43,415 bases of DNA from Macrostomum lignano (taxonomy: Eukaryota): the NCBI GenBank assembly GCA_002269645.1, contig NIVC01000908.1:1-43415 (forward strand), written 5' to 3'. Below the pieces are notes generated by a model that worked only from the letters and a program-made list of their open reading frames with translations, searched no databases and was not told the DNA's origin. Of this stretch, positions 8,268 through 39,542 are shown one piece after another. How positions within the stretch are numbered: position 1 is the first letter of the stretch; each line of letters starts with the position of its first letter. The translations under genes were made by a program, and so were the position numbers.

Positions 8268-11200
8268 ATGTCTAGCGGTTTGAAAGCTTTAAAAGAAGAA
8301 ATTGACCAACTGAAGAATGCTTTTCCTAAGACCCATAGTGTATTTAGAGTTTCATCAGCCAACCTCGATGAAATGACTTGCAAGTTTATTTTGAAATCAC
8401 AATCATTTGAATTGATTGCAACTATAATGGTAAGTTAATTGTGCTGCATATAAGATTATATTATTATACGAAGGGTGTTGCAAAATTTTCCGGACTGATG
8501 CTCTTCATGGTGATAATTTTAGTTTGATTCAGCAAAAAACTTAAACAGACAAACAGGCAACTTGTATTTTATAATATTATAAAGTTTCAGAAAGTTTGGA
8601 GTTGATGGTTAATAGTATAAGCGATTGTACACTAGATTATTTATAGTCATGAAATACGATTTCCGAGTTACAGCTACCAATCACTGTCACTGTCGCTTCT
8701 ATCGCCGGATGCGTCCACAGATTGATTGCTGGCTCGCTCCACGTATTCGCCATTTATGGAGATGCATTTTTGGTAGCGCTCAATCAGCTTGTCGAAGCCA
8801 GACTCCCAGAAGCTGGCATCGAACCAGTGCAGAGACTTGTTGGCTGCTTCGATGACCTCCTCGCGCGTTGTGAAGATCTCGCCACGCATTGGCATCTTCA
8901 TTAGGCCAAAGAGGTGAAAATCGGCGATGGCGAGATCGGGACTGTAGGCTGGGTGGTTCAGCAGTCAGAAGCCTAGCTCTTCCGCCTTGGCTTGCGTGCA
9001 AGCGGCAGCATGAGGACGCGCATTGTCCCAGAGAATGAAGGGCTTCTGGCGCATATTGCGACGCTTACTCAGAACGGCATCACGCAGGCGGTGGAGCTGA
9101 TCGATGACATAGTCAGCATTGATGGTCTGACCTTGGGGCAGGTGGTCAACCATCAGCACACCACGAGCATCAAACCACATAGTGCACATGACACTCTGCA
9201 TCCATGCCAACTTCATGGCCTTCTGGTGCGGGTGGCTTCCTTTTGGGCCCCAATGCATAGTCTGCTGTTTTGTCTGCGGTTGAAACATGGGCAGCGGTGT
9301 TTCATCCATTGTGATGAGCAGCTCTTTGAACTTGCTGTCACCCAGTTCATTCCACAACGCCCAGTTCTCTAGCGAGTAACGCACACGTGCTTTCTTGTGC
9401 TCTTCCGTCAGTTCACGTGGCACCCACTTTGCACAAATCTTGGAGTAGCCTTGGCGTTGCAGAATGCGGCACACAGATGAGTAGTGGATACCAACAGCAC
9501 TCTCCATTTCACGCATGCATGCAGACGGATTTTCTTTCAAATAGTCAAGAATAGCAGTTGTTTTGTCATGACCTGTGCTCGAGCGAGGACGCCCAGATCG
9601 AGAGGCATCAGCGACGTTGGTGACACCGTCAGCAGCGAGTCAGTGATGCTCAAACACTTGAGTGCGACCCAGGGCGTGAACACCGAAAGCAAGACGCACC
9701 TCATCAAAGGTCTGTGTCGCTGTTTTGCCCTGTTGTTGGCATGCCATGATAAAGTGGCGCTGGCTTTCCTTAGACCCGAACTCCAATGGATTCTTTGGTC
9801 GACTCATTTTTGCTCCCTTTTGGTTTGTGAAAAATCGTGTCAACAGCTTCAAAGGGTTGCAACTTATTTTGGCCCTGATGTATGCTGTGATTGACTAAGC
9901 TGCAAAAACTTTTAGGAAAAGTTTTTTTCTATGGCTGAATACCATAGGCATCAATTTTCAGCCAAATCAAACACGAATTATCACTATGAAGAGCATTAGT
10001 CCGGAAACTTTTGCAACACCCCTCGTATATATTAGGCCCTAGCAGTAGCATTTTTATAATTTGAATAGGCCTAGCCCTATGCTTAGTTTTTTTATATAGG
10101 CCTAATGGCCGAATCTATCTAGGACCAAGGCTTATGGTTATGTATAAAGTATAAATGATACTTAAATTTAGATCATGCTTGGGTATAACTGGGTCATTTT
10201 TTTATTGTTGGTTCATTGGCTAGAGCCTAGAGGCCTATGCTAGGATAAGTATCTAGATAGTTTATCTGTTGTTATGTCTAATAAAAGCAATATATAGCAA
10301 ATGAAGAAATGAAAAATATATTGATGCAAAGAGTATTTTTTTACAAATAAGCCATCTTTTTTATCCTTTAGTGCTACTTTTGTTAAGATAAATATAGATT
10401 TATCCCAAGTTTTGAATGTATATTTTGGTAGAAATTTCATATAAAATAAAGAGGTTCATATAGTTTCTTTGTGCATTTTTTATAATTATAGCACTATATA
10501 ATGCAATGAATTGAAATCAAAGCATTGCCAAAGGTTATGTTGCAAAATATTTTTTAAACTAAGTGAATATAAAAAAGACAACAATAAAATTAGTTAATGT
10601 GTAAACAAACTATGACAGTTTTTACTTTTTTTGCTTTGAATATTGGTGACTAAATTATGCAAAAATCAATTAATTAATCATGTAATATATAGTTTATTAT
10701 ATAATAATATTAAAATAAACAATTAACGCACCTACTATCGAATACTCATTTTGTCTGCTAGTAGACAAACTAATAGTAGATAAAATGACCACATCCCAAT
10801 GTAACCTAGGGATTTACCTAGCTGTTTCTATTGGCAATACATATATGTAAGTAACTAATAGATGGAATAGTAATCACATGACTACTCTTAGTTAATAGGA
10901 ACTTATATATATATATGCATTGCCAATAGAAATGGCTAGGTGATTCTCAAAGTTGTGCATATAAAGATTACTATTAGATATAATTAAACTAAAGATAAAA
11001 AAGATTGAATACATATAAGTATTAACCATTTATAATAACTATTAATAAGCAATATGTATTAATATTATAATTAATTATAGTGTAGTAGCATATAAAAATC
11101 ATAATTTCTTATTAAAGTTTTGCCATAACAAAATTAGGATTCTAATATAAATTTAATATCATCATTCTAGATTTTTAGGCACAAGACATGTACAATTGTA

Positions 11201-19357: not shown

Positions 19358-22721
<3,364 letters not shown>

Positions 22722-25645: not shown

Positions 25646-28600
25646 ATGAACCCCCGCTGCGCGCAGTCGTCAAAGCCGCCGACCTCGCCGGCCGCTCCTC
25701 GAGCCCCTGCCTGGCCGGAGTCCATGGAGGCTGAGAAGTCGGCCGCCCTGGTCATGGTTGGCTGCCTGCTTGCCGCTATGGTGCTGCTCACCCTGGCTTA
25801 CGCGGTCTATCAAAGGTACACCTGCAAGGTGTCCAGGCGGCAGAAAAAGGTAAAGACCTTCCGGCTTTGGAGCACCAATTTACAAGGTACAGCGTGCTGC
25901 GGTGTACTGTCTGACGCTGTTGTTGTTGCTGTTGTTGCTGTTGTTGCTGTTGTTGCTGTTGTTGCTGTTGTTGTTGTTGTTTCTGTTGTTGCTGTTGTTG
26001 CTGTTGTTGCTGTTGTTGTTGTTGTTGCTGTTGTTGCTGTTGTTGCTGTTGTTGTTGTTGTTGACTGCGGACCGAGCTCGAAATAACCGGACCAGGTACC
26101 AAACCCCTACCGCTGACAGAGCCAGCGACAAAGGCTGAGCACAGAGGGCCGGACCGAGCCACATCCACCGCCCCTGAGCCAGGAGCGGTGACCGATTCCC
26201 GGCGCTCTTCGCCGCCCGAAGAACGGGCGTTGCCTCCCCCCCGCGACAAAGACGCGGCGCCGGATAGGGCCTGCTGATTACCCAGCAGGCTGGGAGTAAA
26301 TCCCAGGGGGTGTTGTTGTTGTTGCTGTTGTTGCTGTTGTTGCTGTTGTTGTTGTTGTTTTTGTTGTTTTTGCTTTTGTTGTTGTTGTTGTTGTTGTTGT
26401 TGCGGAAGGTGGTCTAGGGCTGCCTATGCAGGCAGTCCAAGAACCTAGCCACCAGATCGCCATCGGCCAAGTCCTCCAGTTGGTGTAGGTCCGTCGCGTG
26501 CCGAGCTCCTGCCAGGGCCGGACATTCGAGGAAGTGGTCCTTGTCTTCAAAGAGGTCGCACCGGAGGCATCTGCTATCCTCCCTAGAGCCTATTCGGTGC
26601 TGATAGTACGCCGTGGAAGGATCGTGACCGGCACGCATTTGAGCTATGGAAACCTGAAGCGCGCGGGGGCGAACGGGCATCGAGGGGGTCTTGCTGTAGA
26701 CCCGCTTCAGCCGGTCATTCAGGAGAGGCCTGTAGTTGATGAGACGGCGTATACGGCTGCGGGCGGCCTCGATGTCGATCCCTAGAATGTCCTGGGGGAG
26801 CAGACAGGCGTTCTTGGCCTCGACGTCGGCTCTCTCGTTACCGGGAGTCCCAGAGTGACCTGGGATCCACTGCAGGACCACGTCGGCGTGGCTCTCCACC
26901 TGTGTCAGCTTGCGCTTGAGCGACTCGAGCAGAGGGTTCAGGGAGTGTTGCCGACCCTTGAGCGCCGCAATGGCCGATCGGCTGTCGGTGAGGATCAGGG
27001 CAGAGTCCTGTTTAGTCTCAAGGATGTGATCCAGGGCGAGGTGCAGAGCTGAGAGTTCAGCTTGGAACGAGCTACACCAGCGCCCGGTAGCAGCTCCCTC
27101 AATCCAAACCACCTGGCCCGAGGTAGGGGCGACCGCCACACAGGCTGCCCCTCCATTCTCAGTTCCTTCTGATGCAGACCCGTCGGTGAAGTAGTGGATC
27201 TTGCGGTCGCCCCATGATTGAATGGTGTCTTCCGTCGCCGACCGCCTGGTCTCTGGCGGATCGTTCCTGGAGATCGGCTGAGTCAGGTGTTCGCAAAGGG
27301 TGACCCGATCCTCAATTCTCGGAAGCCAGGGCTCGTTCCTGATCCAGTTCGATTCCCGGCGTGGGCAATGCAGAATCTGCTCGGATTCCAGCTTGGCTTG
27401 ATCCCGGAGGCCTTTGTTAGCTTTGAGCCTGCGCCGGCCTTGGTCTTCGCAGAGGCTGCGCCAAGGGTCGTAGGCAGGCCGCCTGAGGGCCTTCTTGACA
27501 GCCAGCAGGGCTCTTCTGTGTCCTTCAACGGAAATGGGAACGGTTCCGAGTTCGAGGTAAACGGCCTCCTCCGGAGTGGATTTAGGGAGGCCGGCCACGG
27601 TTCTGAGCGCTGCCCTTTGAGCCCGTTCGAGTTCGTTCAACCGGCTTTTGGATAGCCAAGGTAGCCAGGCCGCTGCCGCGTGCCATATGACAGATTCGAC
27701 CATGGCGGTGTACGTACGCATCAGCAGCTTACGGTCCCAGCCCCAGCTCCTTTGTGCTAGCGCTCTCACGATGTTGGTGCGTTTGGCCATCTTTTATTTG
27801 ACCGTTTTAACTTGTTGAGCAAAGATGAGTCCGCGGTCGATCCAAATACCGAGGTATTTGAGAGACTCAGTGAAGCGAAGTTGAGTGCCGGCAAGATGGA
27901 GATCAGGTGGCCGATCAAAGTCGGCCCGGTTCCTAGAGAAGAGGCACGCCTGGGTTTTAGCCGGGTTAACCGAGATACGGAGGTCTCTGGTCCAGGTTTC
28001 GATGAAGTCCAGGGCGCTCTGTAGCTTTCTGGTGAGGTTCTGAAGGCTACTGTCAGTAGCCCATAGGCAGAGGTCGTCAGCGAATCCTCCAAGTTGAACT
28101 TCAGTTTCAGGGAAGCCAGTCAAATCATTGACGTAAAGGAGGAAAAGGACCGGGGAGCACACCGCTCCCTGGGGAACTCCACTGGTGATGCGGCGCCACT
28201 TCCCGGTGGTGTTGCCGATTTTGGCACAGATGGTTCTACCTTCCAGAAAATTGGCTAGCCAATGCGTCATACGATCTGGCATGTCTTCGTCCATCATCCG
28301 ATTAATGAGCTTGTCATGCCAAACTGTGTCGAAGGCTTTGGAGCAATCGAGGACGGTAGCCGCTGTCTTGAGGGGAGGTTTGCATTCCCACCCGTCTTGG
28401 ATCGATTGGACCAGACGGGCGACCTGCTCCTCACAGCTGCGGCCTCTTTGGAAGCCCGCTTGCCAGTGTTTGAGGATGTTGAAGGTCTCAATCCAATGAA
28501 AGAGGCGGTCTAGGACCATGCGTTCCATAATCTTGGCGCAGATCGATGTGAGACTGACCGGTCTATAGCTATCGCAGCTCTGCGGGTCTTTACCGTCCTT

Positions 28601-30951
28601 CAGGAGGGGCACCACTATTGCTTGTTTCCAGATGCCAGGGCAGTGGCCAATCTTCCAGCTACGGTTGAAGAGTTTGAGCCAGGCTTCCGTCCAGCTTTCT
28701 GGCAGGTGCTTGAAGAATGCCGCCTCTATCTTGTCCGGCCCTCCTTTCTTGTTGATGTCCAGGTAGTCGATAGCTCTCTCGAGTTCACTCTTGGTGAAGG
28801 GGGCGTCATAGTCGCTGGCATGCGGGTGATAAGCACTCAAGCGATTGGAGGTGAGTTTTTTGTAGCGGCGATCACCCGGTTGTTGGTCGGGTCTGCAGAC
28901 CTTGGCAAAGTGTCTGCCAAACGCTTCTGCCTTTTGTTTGTCAGTCTTACATTCTTTGCCTTGGACCACGAGGGTCTCGTTGGGGGACGCCCCGTTATTA
29001 CCCGTGTTCAAACATTTAATGGTCCTCCAGACGGCCTTAGGGTCGGAGGAGGAGGAGATCTTGCCGAGGTACTCTCTCCAGAACTGGGCTTTCTTCTCAG
29101 CGCACCGACTGTTCAGCTCTTGGGTCTTCATGTTCCAGTCCTCGACCGGGCTTCCCCTTCTACGGAGGTTGTTCCTCTCATCTCTCAGCTGGGAAAGCTC
29201 CTCGTCCCAGAAGGGGCGGTTACGAGGGGAGACTTTCTTCAGCGGGATGGATTCTTTTGCCGCCTGCTTCATAGTCGTGCAGAGCCGGGCAATCTGCTGT
29301 TTAATAGTGCCGGTGTTCAGGTCAGCAGAGTGCTCTTCTAGGTAGGAGTGATAGCGATTCCAGTCGGCCTTTTTCCAGGCCCAGGAAAACCTGGGTTCTT
29401 TGGCCAGGGCCGGGCGGATACCATGAATCGTGATAAGAATCGGCTTATGATCAGAACCCAGCTCCGGCAGGACAGTCCAAGAGTACCGCCCAGCTAGGGA
29501 TCTGCTGGCGAAAGAGATGTCCAGGGCGCTTTCCTGTCCTGACCGGCGGTCGACACAGGTGAGAGTGCCGTGGTTGAGGAAGCGGTAGTCGTTGTTCTCA
29601 ACCCAGTCAACGAGGCAGCCGGCTTCAGTAACGTCTTCTGGACCTTGACCGGGTTTGCTGCCCCATTTCTGGTGGTGCAGGTTAAAGTCTCCCACAATGA
29701 GCTCCGCATTGTGCGGGGTAAGCCTGGAGACCACACTAGGGTTGATTCTTCTGTCCACCGTGTTGGAGCGCCGCGTTGGTGGTCGGTAGACACTGGTCAG
29801 CACGATGGTCTCACGGGCGGTGATGTGCAAGGCGATACGATGCCCTTCCGTGATGCCACCGCCCCAGTACCGAAGCTTTCGGAAGGAGATGGATTGGCGC
29901 ACGAAAACCAGCAGCCCTCCTCCTTTGGACTCTGCTCCATTGCGGGCAATTTGCCGGTCTTTTCTGATGGTGGTAAAGCCCGGAATCCTGGGGTTTGGAT
30001 GCTGTTTTTCCAGCTTCGATTCTTGGACTGCAATAAGGTCGATAGAGAGCCGATTGGCTATTTCTTCAAGTTCACCTAACTTATTGCGGATGCCATCCGC
30101 ATTCCATTGGAGGAGTCTAATACCAGGCTCCGACAAGTCTTCGCTGGCGGTGGTTTTGAAGTCCTGGCTGGGATCGGGCGAGCGCTGGTTAGGTTGCCCT
30201 TCCTCAGCCGGTCTGTTATGGTGATGCAAGCAGGTTTCACAGGTCCAGCGGCCCGTGGCAACATCACGTCGGATAGCCTCTCTGGTCTGCTTGGTGCACG
30301 CGTTATGGAACAGCCTCTCGCACACTTTGCACTCCGCAATAATGGTGGAGATGCGGACGGGCTTGTTGCAATCACCACACTTTGGTTTTTCTCTTTGAAT
30401 GAGCTGCATGCGTCTGGTACGGCGTTGAGTGGTCATGGGTTGGCCAACCACCTCCGGCGCGGCCGGGGGGGTGTGGTTCAGATTCTGCTGGGTGGAGCAA
30501 GCCGTATGGTTCCGGTTGTCCTGGGAGCAAACAATGCATTGCCAGGTCGTCCAGTCAGTGCGGTCAGCCCTCCAACGCGTGAGACCCGAGCAGGAGCTCT
30601 GCCGGTGAAAGTGGCGCTGGCAATTAGAACAGACCGCGGGATTATTGCGAATCGAAGTGCCGCAGTTCGGGTGCCCACAATCCGGTCCCGGGTTGGGTTC
30701 GACATCTCCGGCCATAAGGAGCAGCGCCGGGAGCTGGGGGGCCGGGCGCCCAACTCCGTAGGCCTTAGGCCTCAGTTCGCGCGCTCTCGTTCTACGTAAC
30801 CAAACTAGACCAGGTGGCGATCTGGTGTCCGAGTTTAGGCGCTCTTCGGGCTCCGCCAAAAAGGCGGGGCGACCCCTCCACGACGGTGACGTGGCGCCTA
30901 GCAGGAGCCACCGGTGTTTGTCCGGTGGGCCAGAAGTAGACTCCGGCGGGT

Positions 30952-30982
<31 letters not shown>

Positions 30983-31448
30983 TTTTTATTGTTGTTGTTG
31001 TTGCTGTTGTTGTTGTTGTTGCTGTTTTTGTTGTTGTTGCTGTTGTCCTTGTTGCTGCTGCTGTTGTTGCTGTTGTTGCTGTTGCTGCTGTTGTCCTTGT
31101 TGCTGCTGTTGTTTCTGTTGTTGTAGGTGCTGTTGCAATTGCATTGAATTACTACTGAACCGAATTTCACTAAAAAGCTCTCCCATTCCGATTCTGCAAA
31201 TTTCGAATTTTATTGTCACATTCGATGGGGACTCTGAAAGCTAGGAATCGGTGTCAACTCGTACTCGCATGTATTTGTAGCAGTCATTCCTACAATCAAA
31301 TTTACTTACTTTTGTTGTAATTAGGTGACTCGCAGCCTCCCGATGAAGCAATCGGTGAACGAATCGTTTCTGGTGCAGCAGCAGCAGCGGCAGCGGCAGC
31401 TGCAAGCAGACAACAAGAGTTCAATGAGTACAGGTCCGGGTCAGCAGC
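25646..31448 (+). CDS. Putative single-pass membrane protein. Exons ~25646-25849 and 31325-31448, possibly also 24446-24634 and 31923 onward; its intron holds the SINE and LINE
   Basis: A hydrophobic segment ALVMVGCLLAAMVLLTLAYAVY is followed by basic QRYTCKVSRRQKK. Donor AAG|GTAAAG (25849) and acceptor TTAG|GTG (31324) join in phase 0 to VTRSLPMKQSVNESFLVQQQQ. The upstream exon could not be joined in frame. Confidence 0.4.
25915..26063 (-). repeat. (CAA/CAG)n microsatellite; sister tracts at 26311-26401 and 30951-31130
   Basis: Directly visible. The three tracts bracket the SINE-like element and the LINE. Confidence 0.95.
26064..26310 (-). mobile_element. 247-bp non-coding SINE/RIME-like element headed by an HDV-like ribozyme
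   Basis: A GC-rich unique block between two (CAA)n tracts. Its 5' 112 nt match the 5' end of the neighbouring LINE in structure and motifs. Confidence 0.7.
26199..26310 (-). ncRNA. HDV-like self-cleaving ribozyme (predicted)
   Basis: P1 CCCCCU/G-run, two J1/2 hairpins, P2 CCGGCGC/GCGCCGG, P3 GCG/CGC, L3 UCUUUGU, P1.1 partner AG, GCAAC, P4 GCCCG-UUCUU-CGGGC and J4/2 GGCGAA (catalytic C at 26211). Confidence 0.8.
26414..30859 (-). pseudogene. Retrotransposon polyprotein (~1480 codons) interrupted by one in-frame TAA at 27794-27796
   Basis: 2A LLLMAGDVEPNPGP and two PHD-like fingers. APE motifs WNADG, VQESKL, VYRPP, GDFNLHH, GSDHKPI. RT motifs YRPVSLTS, QAGFQ, GVPQGAVCSP, FADD, KYLGIWID. RNase H motifs FTDGS, QAEL, TDSRS, WIPGHSGTPGNERAD. 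C-terminal CLRC...H...C. The two listed ORFs are in one frame (AAA TAA AAG ATG). Confidence 0.93.
30836..30950 (-). ncRNA. HDV-like ribozyme at the LINE 5' end (predicted, P1 and P1.1 imperfect)
   Basis: P2 UAGGCGC/GCGCCUA, P3 ACG/CGU, L3 UCACCGU, P1 CCCGCC/GGAGGG (one G-A mismatch), P4 CCGCC-UUUUU-GGCGG and J4/2 CGAA (C at 30848). Confidence 0.7.
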
Positions 31449-32855: not shown

Positions 32856-33634
32856 ATTGAAAGGAAATGAATTTAAAAGGCCCTTTAATTCGGGTTTTTC
32901 AAAGATTCACGACCATGACTGCCAGCTATGGTGCACACAGCCTCCCAAAGGCTAGGGTGCCCGCAGCCTCCATGCAACTATCACTGACATGAGCCAGCAG
33001 CCACATACCGATAAACCGCGATTCCCATTACCTAAGAAATGAGTTTGTTTACTTCGCAGCAACAGATATCTGCTGTCCGTCAGCTCTGGCGCCGTCTTTC
33101 ATGCTCGCACGCAGAAACTCGGACTCGGCCAGCCCCCCCCCACCGCTTCGGGCTGACAGCAGCAGCAGAGCGTGGGCGAGCGACTGCCGGGGATCTGGGC
33201 AGCCACCCCAGTCCCGCCAGCCAACCCCGAACCCGGTGTACGCTCCCTGACCATCGCCAGGGCATTCTGAAGTACACCGAGACTGTACTCACTGTGTACA
33301 CGAAGAGAAGCTCTGTCTCCAGGCAATGGCTCGGCTCTGCACTCCTGTCCCAGCAGGCCTGTTTCCTTTCCTCTTCGGTTCAATAATCCCATCCCCACAG
33401 CAGGAGGGACGGCCGGCCGGGCGGGCAGAAACCCCGGGGGCCGGGCGGAGGCACCGCGGAAAGACAGTCGCCCGCGCTGCGGCAAGCAACTGCCAGCCAC
33501 CTCCCCCCTCTCTGGCCAGCAATTTTCCTCCCCCATCGCTATAAAGAGTGCGTCCGCACCGCGGGCAGAAATCCCAGTCCAGGATAGCCGGGTACAGCAC
33601 AGTTGCCAGACAGACAGACCTGCAGCGGCTCGGG

Positions 33635-36295
33635 ATGCTCAACAGCGGCGGCGCCGGCGGCGCCAGCGGGGGCGCCGAGCAGGCGGCCATCCACTTCTAC
33701 GACGCCATCATCCAGAACGACATGGACGCATTGCGACGCGCCGTCGAGGTGTTCAAAGTCGATCTGAACGCCAAATTCACCCTGGTGAGGAAGCAGCACC
33801 ACTTCGACCTGTTCCCCGTGCACCTGGTGGCCTACAAGGGCTACCTGTCCATGCTGCACTACCTGATCCAGACTGGTGTGGCCGTCAACCAGACCACGGC
33901 GACGCTGCACCGTCACGCGGTGCACTACGCGGCACTGCGGTCCCAGCTGTCCTGCCTGCAGATGCTGGTGAACGCTGGCGGCAAGATCGACGCCAGAGAC
34001 ACGTTCGGGAACACGCCGCTACACTACGCTGCCGAGGATGGCAACGTCATTCTCATGTCGCTGCTGCTGCACAACGGGGCCAGCTTGGATGCTCAGGTGA
34101 GAGATCGTGTGAATAGAATGCTGTTCGTGTGACTGTACCGTACACTATCGTGTGAATAGAATGCTGTCCATGTGACTGTACCCTACACTATCGTGTGAAT
34201 AGAATGCTGTTTGTATGACTGTACCGTACACTATCGTGTGAATAGAATGCTGTCCGTGTGACTGTACCGTACACTATCGTGTGAATAGAATGCTGTCCAT
34301 GTGACTGTACCCTACACTAGTAGCCCTTTGCACCTGCCGGCCCGTCATTCGCCCCGCAGGACATCACGAACAAGACGCCGCTGATGAAGGCCACCCGCAA
34401 CGGCAAGTTGGCGGCCGTGAAGCGCCTCACAGCCGCCGGTGCCAGCGTCAACCTCAAGGACAAGAACGAAGACACGGCGCTGCACTTTGCCGCCAGGCAC
34501 GGCTCCGGAGAGATGACCTGCATGCTCATCAGGGTGAGGGCCGGTGGCTGTGTGAGTGCGTGCTTGGTGCTGTAGGTGGCTGTGTGAATGCATGCTTGGT
34601 GCTGTAGGAAGGTGGCTGTGTGAATGGGTGCTTGGTGCTGTAGGTGGCTGTGTGAATGGGTGCTTGGTGCTGTAGGTGGCTGTGTGAATGCGTGCTTGGT
34701 GCTGTAGGTAGGTGGCTGTGTGAATGGGTGCTTGGTGCTGTAGGTGGCTGTGTGAATGTGTGCTTGGTGCTGTAGGTAGGTGGCTGTGTGAATGGGTGCT
34801 TGGTGCTGTAGGTGGCTGTGTGAGTTGGTTGTTGGTATTGTTAGTGGCTGTCTGAGTGGGCGGATAGCGAGGTCACGTGCTGCTGGATTTCCACCGATCC
34901 TTAATAATTCCGTTGTGTCATAAAAGTTCATTAAAACCAACATCGACAATTTTAATCATATCTGCTTACACTGAGCTCCATTCCTCTGGCCGAGGTGCGC
35001 GTCAGCTTTTTCAGTCGGTCATAAAATTTCCAATGCATGCACAGCTTTAAGTCCGAGATTGGGGGCTCGAACTCTTGGTGAACTAAATGCGGGACAAATA
35101 GTCTTTGATTATTGTGAACATTTTCCGGATTCCGTGCGTTTCAATGTTTGGTAAAACAGAAAAATAAAAGCTAGATAAGGACAGGAAAGGACAGGACAGG
35201 ACAGGACAGGACAGGACAGGACAGGATAGGATAGGACAGGACAGGACAGGACAGGACAGGACAGGACAGGACAGGACAGGATAGGATAGGATAGGACAGG
35301 ACAGGACAGGACAGGACAGGATAGGATAGGATAGGATAGGACAGGACAGGACAGGACAGGAAAGGACAGGACAGGACAGGACAGGACAGGATAGGACAAG
35401 ATAAGACAGGACAGGACAGGACAGGATAAAGATAGGACAAGACAGGATAGAACACGACAGGACAGGATAAGGATTAGGACAGGACAGGATAGGACAGGAT
35501 AAGACAGGACAGGACAGGACATGATAAGGATAGGACAGGACAGGACAGGATAAAAATACGACAGGACAGGATAGGACAGGATAAGACAGGACAGAACAGG
35601 AAATAACAGGACAGGATAGGATGTACAGAACAGGACAGAAAAAGCAGCATTCCAATCCCTCAGGCTGAAGCTCGGGTGGACGCGCAGAACCAGTGGGGCC
35701 TGACGCCCCTGATGGAGGCGGTGTCCTACAACCAGAAGGAGGTGGTGGCAGCGCTCATCAAGCACAGGTGCGACCTGTACAAGCGCGACTTTCGCACCGG
35801 AGACACGAGTCTGCACATCGCGGTGAAGAAGAACTACACAGACTTGGTGAGCATGCTGCTCAGCGCGGGCAACTGGTACATCCAGTACAACTTCAACAAC
35901 TTCGGCGAGTCATTCGTGCACGACGTCGTGGTGTACAATCGGATGGACCTGCTGCGCCTGTTCGTCACCTACAACTACAACTTCGACTACCCGGCCAAGA
36001 AGACGCCCACCGGAGTGGAGAAGCTGCCGTTCCAGCTGGTGCTGGAGCGCGGCCACCTGGAGATGGCGAAGATTCTGGCCCAGGTGGGCTGCTATTCCTC
36101 ATCGCGATTCTGCCAGAGCAGTGTGCGCCGCTGTCCGGAGCTCGAATCCGTGAAATCGCTGCGATCCTGGGCGCGGAAGACCATCAGGGATCAGCTGGGC
36201 TTCAGCCCGGGCGGCAAGATCAACAAGCTGCCGGTGCCCACCATGGTGAAGGACTTCCTGCTGCTCAAGGATGTGAAATGGGACACGAGGCTTCC

Positions 36296-38397: not shown

Positions 38398-38555
38398 ATT
38401 GTGTAAACTGTCTATGGCCGTCTAAAAAATCACTTCAAGCCTTTTCTTCCCCAGTGGTTTCAGCATTTTGTTGGCAACTATATATTTTGTAACTGGGCCA
38501 GATTTCTTGCTTGCATTTTCTCTACAATTGCTGTCGCTCTAGTAAATCCGAAATC

Positions 38556-39542
38556 ATGAATTCCAACAAACCGTTACAGCAGAAAGACACGAAACAGTCA
38601 GAAGACCAGCAGAAAAAGAAGCGCAGAGGATCAAGCAAGGAAAGGCGAGAATCGCAGCTGCAGCGAAGTACCATGTCCAAGTACTGGGTTATTGAGCGCG
38701 GCGCTCCGTACTCCACTGAGTACAAGCTGTACTTCTACGGGCCCAACGGGCCAATCTCGCCCTTTCACGACATCCCGCTGTTCGCCTGCTCAGAGAAGCG
38801 CGAGCTCAACATGGTGGTTGAGATTCCTCGCTGGACGAACGCAAAGATGGAGATCAGCAAGGATCAGAGGCTGAACCCCATCGTGCAGGACGTGAAGAAG
38901 GGCAAACTGCGCTATGTTGACAACGTGTTCCCCCACCACGGCTACATCTGGAACTACGGCGCCCTGCCGCAGACTTGGGAGGACCCGAACCACACGGACG
39001 AGCGGACACAGGCCAAGGGAGACAATGACCCGCTAGACGTGTGCGAGATCGGGCACCGGGTCCACCCGCGCGGCTCCGTCATTCAGGTGAAGCCGCTGGG
39101 AATTTTAGCCATGATCGACGAGGGCGAAACCGACTGGAAGCTGCTGGCCATCGACACCTCCGATCCGCTGGCCGAGCAGCTCAACGATGTGTCGGACATC
39201 GAGACGCACATGCCCGGCTTCCTGGACGCGACGCGCGGCTGGTTTCGCAACTACAAGGTGCCGCAGGGCAAGCCGCGCAACGAGTTCGCCTTCGACGGCC
39301 AGTTCCAGAGCCGCGACTTTGCGCTGAGCATCATTGACGAGATGCACCGCAGCTGGCAGTCGCTGGTTGGTCACGTGGTCGATCGGAACTCGATCTCGTG
39401 CGACAACGTCTCCGTGATCGGCAGCGCGTACAAGATCGATCACTCGGAGGCGCGCGAGCTGGTGGAGAAGCAGCCGGCCGTGCAGCCGCCCTGCCCCATT
39501 CCGCCGGAGGTGAACCAGTGGCACTTCATCCCAGCTGAATGA
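38556..39542 (+). CDS. PPA1: Soluble inorganic pyrophosphatase (family I, PPA1/Nurf-38 type), coding region uninterrupted; ATG at 38556 or 38673
   Basis: Motifs SPFHDIPL, VEIPRWTNAKMEI, YIWNYGALPQTWEDP, GDNDPLDVCEIG, DEGETDWK and WFRNYKVPQGK. Confidence 0.95.
   Translation: MNSNKPLQQKDTKQSEDQQKKKRRGSSKERRESQLQRSTMSKYWVIERGAPYSTEYKLYFYGPNGPISPFHDIPLFACSEKRELNMVVEIPRWTNAKMEISKDQRLNPIVQDVKKGKLRYVDNVFPHHGYIWNYGALPQTWEDPNHTDERTQAKGDNDPLDVCEIGHRVHPRGSVIQVKPLGILAMIDEGETDWKLLAIDTSDPLAEQLNDVSDIETHMPGFLDATRGWFRNYKVPQGKPRNEFAFDGQFQSRDFALSIIDEMHRSWQSLVGHVVDRNSISCDNVSVIGSAYKIDHSEARELVEKQPAVQPPCPIPPEVNQWHFIPAE

Follow-up and report, generated by a model that had tools for sequence, protein, structure and literature searches.

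What is the short stretch of non-repetitive DNA that lies between two trinucleotide arrays on contig NIVC01000908.1 of Macrostomum lignano (assembly GCA_002269645.1)? The window, which is the whole 43,415-nt stretch of DNA analysed here, holds on its minus strand a 247-nt unit (26310→26064) bordered on either side by a (CAA)n array. The original prediction had taken this unit for a non-coding element headed by a textbook hepatitis delta virus (HDV)-like ribozyme. We find that the unit, hereafter the short element, carries a complete HDV-like fold that is rare by chance, and its sequence indicates that this ribozyme shares ancestry with the one heading the family of the neighbouring long interspersed nuclear element (LINE). 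With moderate confidence, we interpret the short element as a bipartite or short internally deleted element (SIDE), that is, a SIDE/RIME-like non-autonomous retroposon of a (CAA)n-tailed LINE family of the apurinic endonuclease (APE) type.

Along the minus strand, unique DNA is followed by a degenerate (CAA/CAG)n array (31135-30951), the LINE (30950-26403), a (CAA)n array (26402-26311), the short element (26310-26064), a further (CAA/CAG)n array (26063-25921) and again unique DNA. According to the repeat listing, the array upstream of the LINE (30951..31135) is either a target microsatellite or an older tail. Sequence reading together with the same listing assigns the middle array (26311..26402) to the LINE as its 3' tail and equally to the short element as its 5' flank, and the last one (25921..26063) to the short element as its 3' tail. 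The LINE and the short element are arranged head to tail in the same orientation, the latter directly downstream of the LINE tail. Both start at the junction ...ACA|CCC, both end in (CAA)n, and UCCGCA forms the last unique bases common to the two. As a whole (26064..26310, minus strand), the short element consists of a ribozyme head and a structured 3' domain, with a minimum free energy (MFE) z-score of -3.8.

The ribozyme head comprises 112 nt (26199..26310, minus strand) and was identified by a structure descriptor, a helix-by-helix check, a match to Rfam family RF02682 and covariation with the LINE copy. The helices P1 (6 bp), P2 (7 bp), P3 (3 bp), P1.1 (2 bp) and P4 (5 bp) follow the canonical double-pseudoknot order. 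By descriptor and helix check, the 5' strand of P1, CCCCCU (26305..26310), pairs with 26241-26236 or, in the other register, with 26242-26237, forming five C-G pairs and one U•G pair. It is followed by a peripheral J1/2 domain (26269..26304) of two inserted hairpins, GGGA-UUUAC-UCCC and GCCUGCUGG-GUAA-UCAGCAGGC, which are recovered by MFE folding and conserved in the LINE. Helix check and folding pair the P2 5' strand CCGGCGC (26257..26263) with the 3' strand GCGCCGG (26199..26205). P3, composed of GCG and CGC (26243..26255; helix check), encloses the loop L3 UCUUUGU, in which the 5' U, the C for P1.1 and the conserved G are all in place. The 3' strand of P1, a run of seven Gs, together with the subsequent AG, which pairs with CU of L3 as P1.1, occupies 26234..26242 (descriptor and helix check), and P4 is the hairpin GCCCG-UUCUU-CGGGC (26214..26228; helix check and folding). 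The J4/2 segment GGCGAAGA (26206..26213), located by the helix check and aligned with GGCUAAGA of the RF02682 consensus, contains the candidate catalytic C at 26211. Every element listed in the original prediction (P1, P2, P3, L3, P1.1, P4 and J4/2) was recovered in the helix check.

Despite this complete fold, the ribozyme is less than textbook in several respects. P1 has only 6 bp, and the seven-G run leaves one spare G, hence two P1 registers and an ambiguity of one nucleotide; for comparison, P1 of R2 ribozymes is typically 6-7 bp, with J1/2 loops from 23 to >700 nt (PMC3774820). Moreover, P1 opens at the cleavage site with the pair C26310-G rather than with a G•U wobble. This is not disqualifying, because the active L1Tc ribozyme (L1TcRz) cleaves 5' of C1 within a G-C-rich P1 (PMC3185411). 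The best Rfam match, RF02682 (HDV-F-prausnitzii) against 26268..26198 (minus strand), shares the arrangement AGGCAAC-P4-GGC[G/U]AAGA and scores 29.5 bits (E = 0.002), below the gathering score of 44; though weak by that standard, it backs the fold independently.

From the sequence we infer self-cleavage at the (CAA)n|CCC junction, with the predicted cut 5' of C26310 at (CAA)n|CCCCCU. Over the 70 nt upstream, the G run has a single perfect partner for P1, and this 5' strand is situated exactly at this junction. The Rfam alignment chose a different P1 (CCUAUCC, cleavage at 26268), which we rejected on account of one mismatch and three wobbles, and since the conserved 5' hairpins would drop from the RNA. 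As these hairpins are conserved, whereas internal cleavage would lose them over generations, the RNA 5' end is more plausibly placed at the junction.

Could a G+C-rich sequence have adopted such a fold by chance, with no ribozyme behind it? The score below the Rfam gathering value and the lack of a G•U wobble at the cleavage site would agree with this, as would the fact that neither the LINE 5' end nor the 5' end of its relative on the metagenome contig L001 (described below) matches an HDV model in Rfam even at E≤10. HDV-like ribozymes, however, generally show little sequence conservation and are detected by structure. The structure descriptor matches a single locus on both strands of the window, compared to 0.01 loci per window expected from 100 dinucleotide-preserving shuffles, a significance that is overstated in that the descriptor was composed post hoc, after the sequence was known. 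With one P1 mismatch allowed, it matches two loci (0.17 expected), which are exactly the 5' ends of the LINE and the short element. A weak covariance-model match at 19557-19464 (minus strand) lies inside an apparent spliced coding exon and was discarded as a chance match.

The comparison with the LINE provides further grounds against a chance fold. BLAST and MAFFT alignments showed that the short element, over its first ~125 nt, is homologous to the LINE 5' end, with ~70% identity and the same architecture. The LINE 5' HDV-like ribozyme (30836..30950, minus strand; BLAST, MAFFT, descriptor, helix check and covariation) has two J1/2 hairpins, P2 UAGGCGC/GCGCCUA, P3 ACG/CGU, L3 UCACCGU, a P4 hairpin and a J4/2 that reads ...CCCGAAGA, in addition to one G•A mismatch in P1. 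For 21 base pairs that fall in the same alignment columns, 21 of 21 are paired in both sequences, with seven two-sided changes, four one-sided changes and none broken, whereas sliding the partners by 1-3 columns leaves 37-55% paired and 0-1 compensations. The double-sided changes comprise two in P2, one in P3 and four in the J1/2 hairpins, the last of which also contain three one-sided changes. This covariation derives from two sequences only, P1 and P4 having been checked in each sequence separately. The earlier view that the primary sequence differs from the LINE therefore applies only to the 3' 123 nt; the head is homologous and has diverged with compensatory changes.

A third instance of the fold comes from the best match to the LINE protein (41% identity), which lies on L001, a contig from a beach-sand metagenome. 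This contig has, immediately ahead of the start of its open reading frame (ORF) and overlapping it, a compact HDV-like fold without the J1/2 insert, composed of a perfect 7-bp P1 (CCCCCUU/GAGGGGG), P3 GCG/CGC, L3 UCUAUCGU, P1.1 CU/AG, P4 GGUGC-GAAA-GCGCC, J4/2 ACGAAUA and a short P2. The L3 U at position 1 and G at position 6 are kept in three of three ribozymes (short element, LINE and L001), as is the C-GAA of J4/2; the importance of the L3 G and U in HDV-like ribozymes has been reported (PMC3774820). Altogether, the seven compensatory pairs with none broken, and this further fold at the 5' end of a related LINE, make a chance fold very unlikely. In shuffle tests, the L001 core is significantly similar in sequence to the short-element core (0 of 500 shuffles as good), whereas its similarity to the core of the neighbouring LINE is not significant. 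Since the L001 core resembles the short element and not the LINE, the short-element head looks like an older form of the ribozyme of this lineage. We also compared all three ribozymes with trypanosome L1Tc Pr77 (oligo R77, PMC1874656), and only the LINE core gave a match, a marginal one: 30871-30895 (minus strand) and nucleotides 14-39 of Pr77 show 19 identities in 25 positions over P3-L3-P3'-P1', a score equalled by 26 of 500 shuffles, which amounts to a weak lead towards common ancestry of the two. The 5' flank of L001 is (TTG/CTG)-rich, i.e. in the complement orientation.

Is there any coding capacity behind the head? The short element contains no ATG-initiated ORF and no tRNA gene (0 by ARAGORN), and Rfam gave no tRNA, 7SL or 5S match to it, which sets it apart from a classical SINE (short interspersed element) with such a head. 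On the minus strand, two of three frames run without a stop across the LINE tail, the 247-nt unit and its own tail, with poly-Q or poly-N flanks, as might be expected if the unit were a protein-coding segment such as a poly-Q-flanked exon. However, the translation is of low complexity, and the stop-free frame has no homologue among 5.8 billion proteins, where no further copies turned up as spurious ORFs either. Open frames are unsurprising at about 65-70% G+C, and those crossing the short element are probably a G+C effect. RNA-level compensatory changes also account better for the conservation, and we consider a coding origin extremely improbable. The non-coding nature of the unit, as first proposed, is confirmed. 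One stop-free frame of 25900-26420 (minus strand) is in register with the leader ORF of the LINE (GEER versus PEER).

The 3' domain of the short element forms one long irregular hairpin (26067..26168, minus strand; -54.5 kcal/mol, z = -5.0, 0 of 200 shuffles as stable) that ends 3 nt before the tail. The LINE 3' end likewise has a terminal stem-loop a few nucleotides before its tail. A 3' half unrelated to the LINE, a single copy, and a surrounding region rich in tandem repeats prone to rearrangement could also be explained by a one-off relic that was never mobile, in which deletion or unequal exchange between tracts of (CAA)n fused a diverged LINE 5' end with unrelated DNA. Such a relic would hardly be expected to have precise (CAA)n boundaries on both sides, nor would random captured DNA be expected to supply an exceptionally stable hairpin sited just before the tail as in the LINE. 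Furthermore, P1 and P2 of the short element are perfect, compared to the P1 mismatch in the adjacent, near-intact LINE. We therefore judge this explanation unlikely.

The LINE itself (26403..30950, minus strand), the putative autonomous partner, was delineated by Pfam, translation and relatives, and has a single ORF encoding a 2A peptide, zinc fingers, APE, reverse transcriptase (RT), RNase H and a CCHC motif. Its long frame (30859-26414, ~1480 codons) is intact except for a single in-frame TAG at 27796-27794 in the RT/thumb region, which may be due to nonsense mutation or may serve as a read-through stop. Judged by domain layout alone, it corresponds to the Ingi/L1Tc arrangement of PMC3708506 (one ORF, N-terminal 2A, APE, RT and RNase H, no ORF1); N-terminal 2A peptides are known in single-ORF APE LINEs, including a mollusc Ingi element (PMC3708506). 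The frame is already open within ribozyme P4 (30859-30683 region, minus strand), and the first ATG (30715) stands directly before the 2A motif MAGDVEPNPGP. A matching arrangement, MAGDVERNPGP with an in-frame ATG inside the ribozyme, is found in L001. This sequence layout suggests that LINE translation begins at or in the ribozyme and that the leader is shed by 2A skipping. Because P1 mismatches are associated with lost in-vitro activity (PMC3774820), the LINE ribozyme may be impaired by its G•A mismatch, by analogy with those ribozymes.

The protein collection contained no close relative of the LINE protein, the best matches (41-43% identity) being metagenome ORFs and a Macrostomum lignano protein, and scans of viral contigs and of bacterial and archaeal genome contigs yielded no relative. 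More distant metagenomic relatives, L002-L007 (29-35% identity), carry 2A motifs and trinucleotide tails of (CAA/CAG)n or (GAA)n. These tails and 2A motifs were seen at 700-1100 and 5690-5730 of L002 and at the 3' ends of L004, L005 and L007. No HDV-like fold was detected in L002-L007 by Rfam, by the descriptor or by a covariance model built here. L002 is a LINE-(CAA)n-LINE tandem, in which the tail of one LINE is directly followed by another LINE.

This tandem bears on a different explanation, in which the 247-nt unit belongs to the LINE unit or array as a 3' module, and its ribozyme cuts read-through RNA after the (CAA)n tail to form the 3' end of the LINE RNA. The unit does follow directly on the LINE tail and has the same orientation, its sole known copy is attached to a LINE, and a cut at 26311/26310 would leave a LINE RNA ending in (CAA)n. 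However, the L002 tail runs directly into another LINE, and the unit possesses its own (CAA)n tail and the LINE-like UCCGCA, as expected of a separately reverse-transcribed unit. In addition, its head differs by ~30% from the adjacent LINE head, which argues that the two were not recently copied together. A purely 3'-module role has, in our estimation, a small chance of being correct.

We thus return to a SIDE/RIME-like retroposon as the favoured interpretation, against which several observations must be weighed. No second copy of the short element occurs within the window, and no further copies were found in pattern scans of metagenome and viral sequences, so that only one copy has been seen. 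The 14 metagenome matches to a 20-base core pattern common to the short element and L001 were all dismissed as chance hits in G+C-rich bacterial coding sequence, and the pattern was absent from viral contigs. The 3' 123 nt (positions 125-247) gave no significant alignment with the LINE, and the putative tie to the RT of this LINE rests on the 6-mer UCCGCA, the tail and structural analogy. Judging from its sequence, the adjacent LINE copy, with its P1 mismatch and in-frame stop, may be dead. No target-site duplication is readable inside the microsatellite for either element of the window, no Rfam family reached its gathering score when the whole window was scanned, and the descriptor, as mentioned above, was a post hoc one.

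How would a short element of this kind move? In the proposed mechanism, the LINE and the short element would use (CAA)n tracts as insertion sites, the tails of one another among them, which would give rise to head-to-tail arrays. Read-through transcription would come from upstream, from either a LINE or a host transcript, and the ribozyme would cut exactly at (CAA)n|CCC to release an RNA that begins at C26310. For the LINE RT, the template end in target-primed reverse transcription (TPRT) into (TTG)n/(CAA)n DNA would then be made up of the 3' hairpin, UCCGCA at the terminus and the (CAA)n tail. Co-transcription, mobilisation in trans by the LINE and microsatellite targeting are, like the cleavage itself, inferred parts of this cycle. 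We further propose, as a speculative extension that is possible yet on the doubtful side, that the two elements constitute a mutual processing system, because both would target (CAA)n and hence pile up head to tail. The ribozyme of the downstream unit would free its own 5' end and at the same time give the LINE RNA upstream its precise (CAA)n 3' terminus, the end priming on (TTG)n DNA, by which the short element would pay for its mobilisation. As part of the same extension, the combination of a ribozyme with 2A, APE, RT and RNase H that this LINE has in common with trypanosome L1Tc/ingi would reflect ancient inheritance rather than convergence.

One of the systems most similar to the short element is found in Drosophila, where R2 SIDEs, as well as R2/R1 hybrid SIDEs, represent metazoan non-autonomous elements headed by HDV-like ribozymes (PMC3414825). 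R2 SIDEs are likewise metazoan, short and non-coding, with a LINE-derived 5' HDV-like ribozyme and a 3' end used for TPRT by the LINE enzyme; they are also located at the specific target of the LINE and depend on co-transcription (PMC3414825). The hybrid SIDEs combine a ribozyme and a 3' end of different origins, as the short element seems to do (PMC3414825). Nevertheless, R2 is of the restriction-like endonuclease (RLE) type and resides in 28S rDNA, whereas the LINE here is an APE-type element bearing RNase H and 2A and lying in (CAA)n tracts. SIDE 3' ends, moreover, are clearly derived from the LINE, whereas such an origin would be conjectural for the 3' end of the short element. Together with the bipartite non-autonomous LINEs reported in the RTE, Ingi, Vingi and R2 clades (PMC5786205), these Drosophila elements mean that the novelty first claimed for a metazoan HDV-headed non-autonomous element was overstated.

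The trypanosomatid elements RIME, NARTc and SIDER carry the ribozyme head of L1Tc/ingi (PMC4035085). The autonomous partners of these short elements (ingi for RIME, L1Tc for NARTc) combine a 5' HDV-like ribozyme with an N-terminal 2A, APE, RT and RNase H in one ORF (PMC4035085, PMC3185411, PMC3383444), as in the LINE described here. Similarly, the short elements share the ribozyme head, and the cleaved RNA begins at a C in a G-C-rich P1. The trypanosome-like logic invoked by the original prediction, here that of RIME/NARTc, fits the short element. By contrast, those elements live in a protist, and their Pr77 head, which also acts as a promoter, hardly differs between LINE and short partner, compared to heads of ~70% identity here.

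In terms of target, a close parallel is Dong of the R4 clade, a (TAA)n-specific LINE with a 5' HDV-like ribozyme (PMC3774820). Both Dong and the LINE of this locus reside in a trinucleotide microsatellite, and the Dong ribozyme cuts at the junction between repeat and element, as predicted here (PMC3774820). Dong differs in being RLE-type, and no short ribozyme-headed partner for it is described in the text of PMC3774820. With regard to the peripheral domain, structured helices between P1 and P2 are also present in drz-Agam-2, which has a P1.2 domain (PMC4908430), and in R2 ribozymes with long J1/2 (PMC3774820). For large HDV-like ribozymes, the gain in rate from a J1/2 helix can come close to three orders of magnitude (PMC4908430). 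Compared to the drz-Agam-2 type, the short element has two tandem J1/2 hairpins, with a putative activating role.

The remainder of the window agrees with the metazoan setting assumed at the outset. An intronless ORF (38511-39542, plus strand) encodes a full-length inorganic pyrophosphatase and represents either a retrogene or evidence of an intron-poor gene. It shares 66% identity with the pyrophosphatase of Macrostomum lignano and 90% with Logan transcripts (SRR28338163-66), and among solved structures it matches the enzyme of Schistosoma japonicum best. A metazoan host is thereby supported, with a flatworm as the likely one. A second LINE-like ORF, 5'-truncated (19785-21847, minus strand; 629 aa), contains RT and C2H2 zinc fingers and ends in a trinucleotide tail of (GAA)n/(GAT)n; its surroundings yielded no ribozyme. 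LINEs with trinucleotide tails seem to be frequent in the source genome. A coding-looking exon at ~19395-19545 on the minus strand, with splice-like borders, hints at host transcription in the same direction as the elements. The window also contains a mariner/Tc1 transposase fragment (8965-9540, minus strand) and an ankyrin-repeat ORF (33548-34132, plus strand). Minisatellites are very dense between its genes and transposons, amounting to 57 rows of tandem repeats (TRF) with periods of 12-45 nt and arrays of up to 1.3 kb.

No new category of element is opened by this locus, which is of interest for its host lineage, for the L1Tc-like arrangement of the LINE and for the clean covariation. If our interpretation is correct, ribozyme-headed non-autonomous retroposons would extend beyond the R2 SIDEs of Drosophila and the RIME, NARTc and SIDER elements of trypanosomatids to a flatworm-like metazoan. 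The short-element head would represent a compact natural HDV-like ribozyme with a two-hairpin J1/2 domain and a C at +1. The partner of the short element would be an APE-type, microsatellite-associated LINE with a layout similar to L1Tc/ingi, in which a 5' ribozyme and an N-terminal 2A precede the APE, RT and RNase H domains. Such a pair would also back the idea that LINE clades with 5' ribozymes spawn bipartite non-autonomous partners (PMC5786205).

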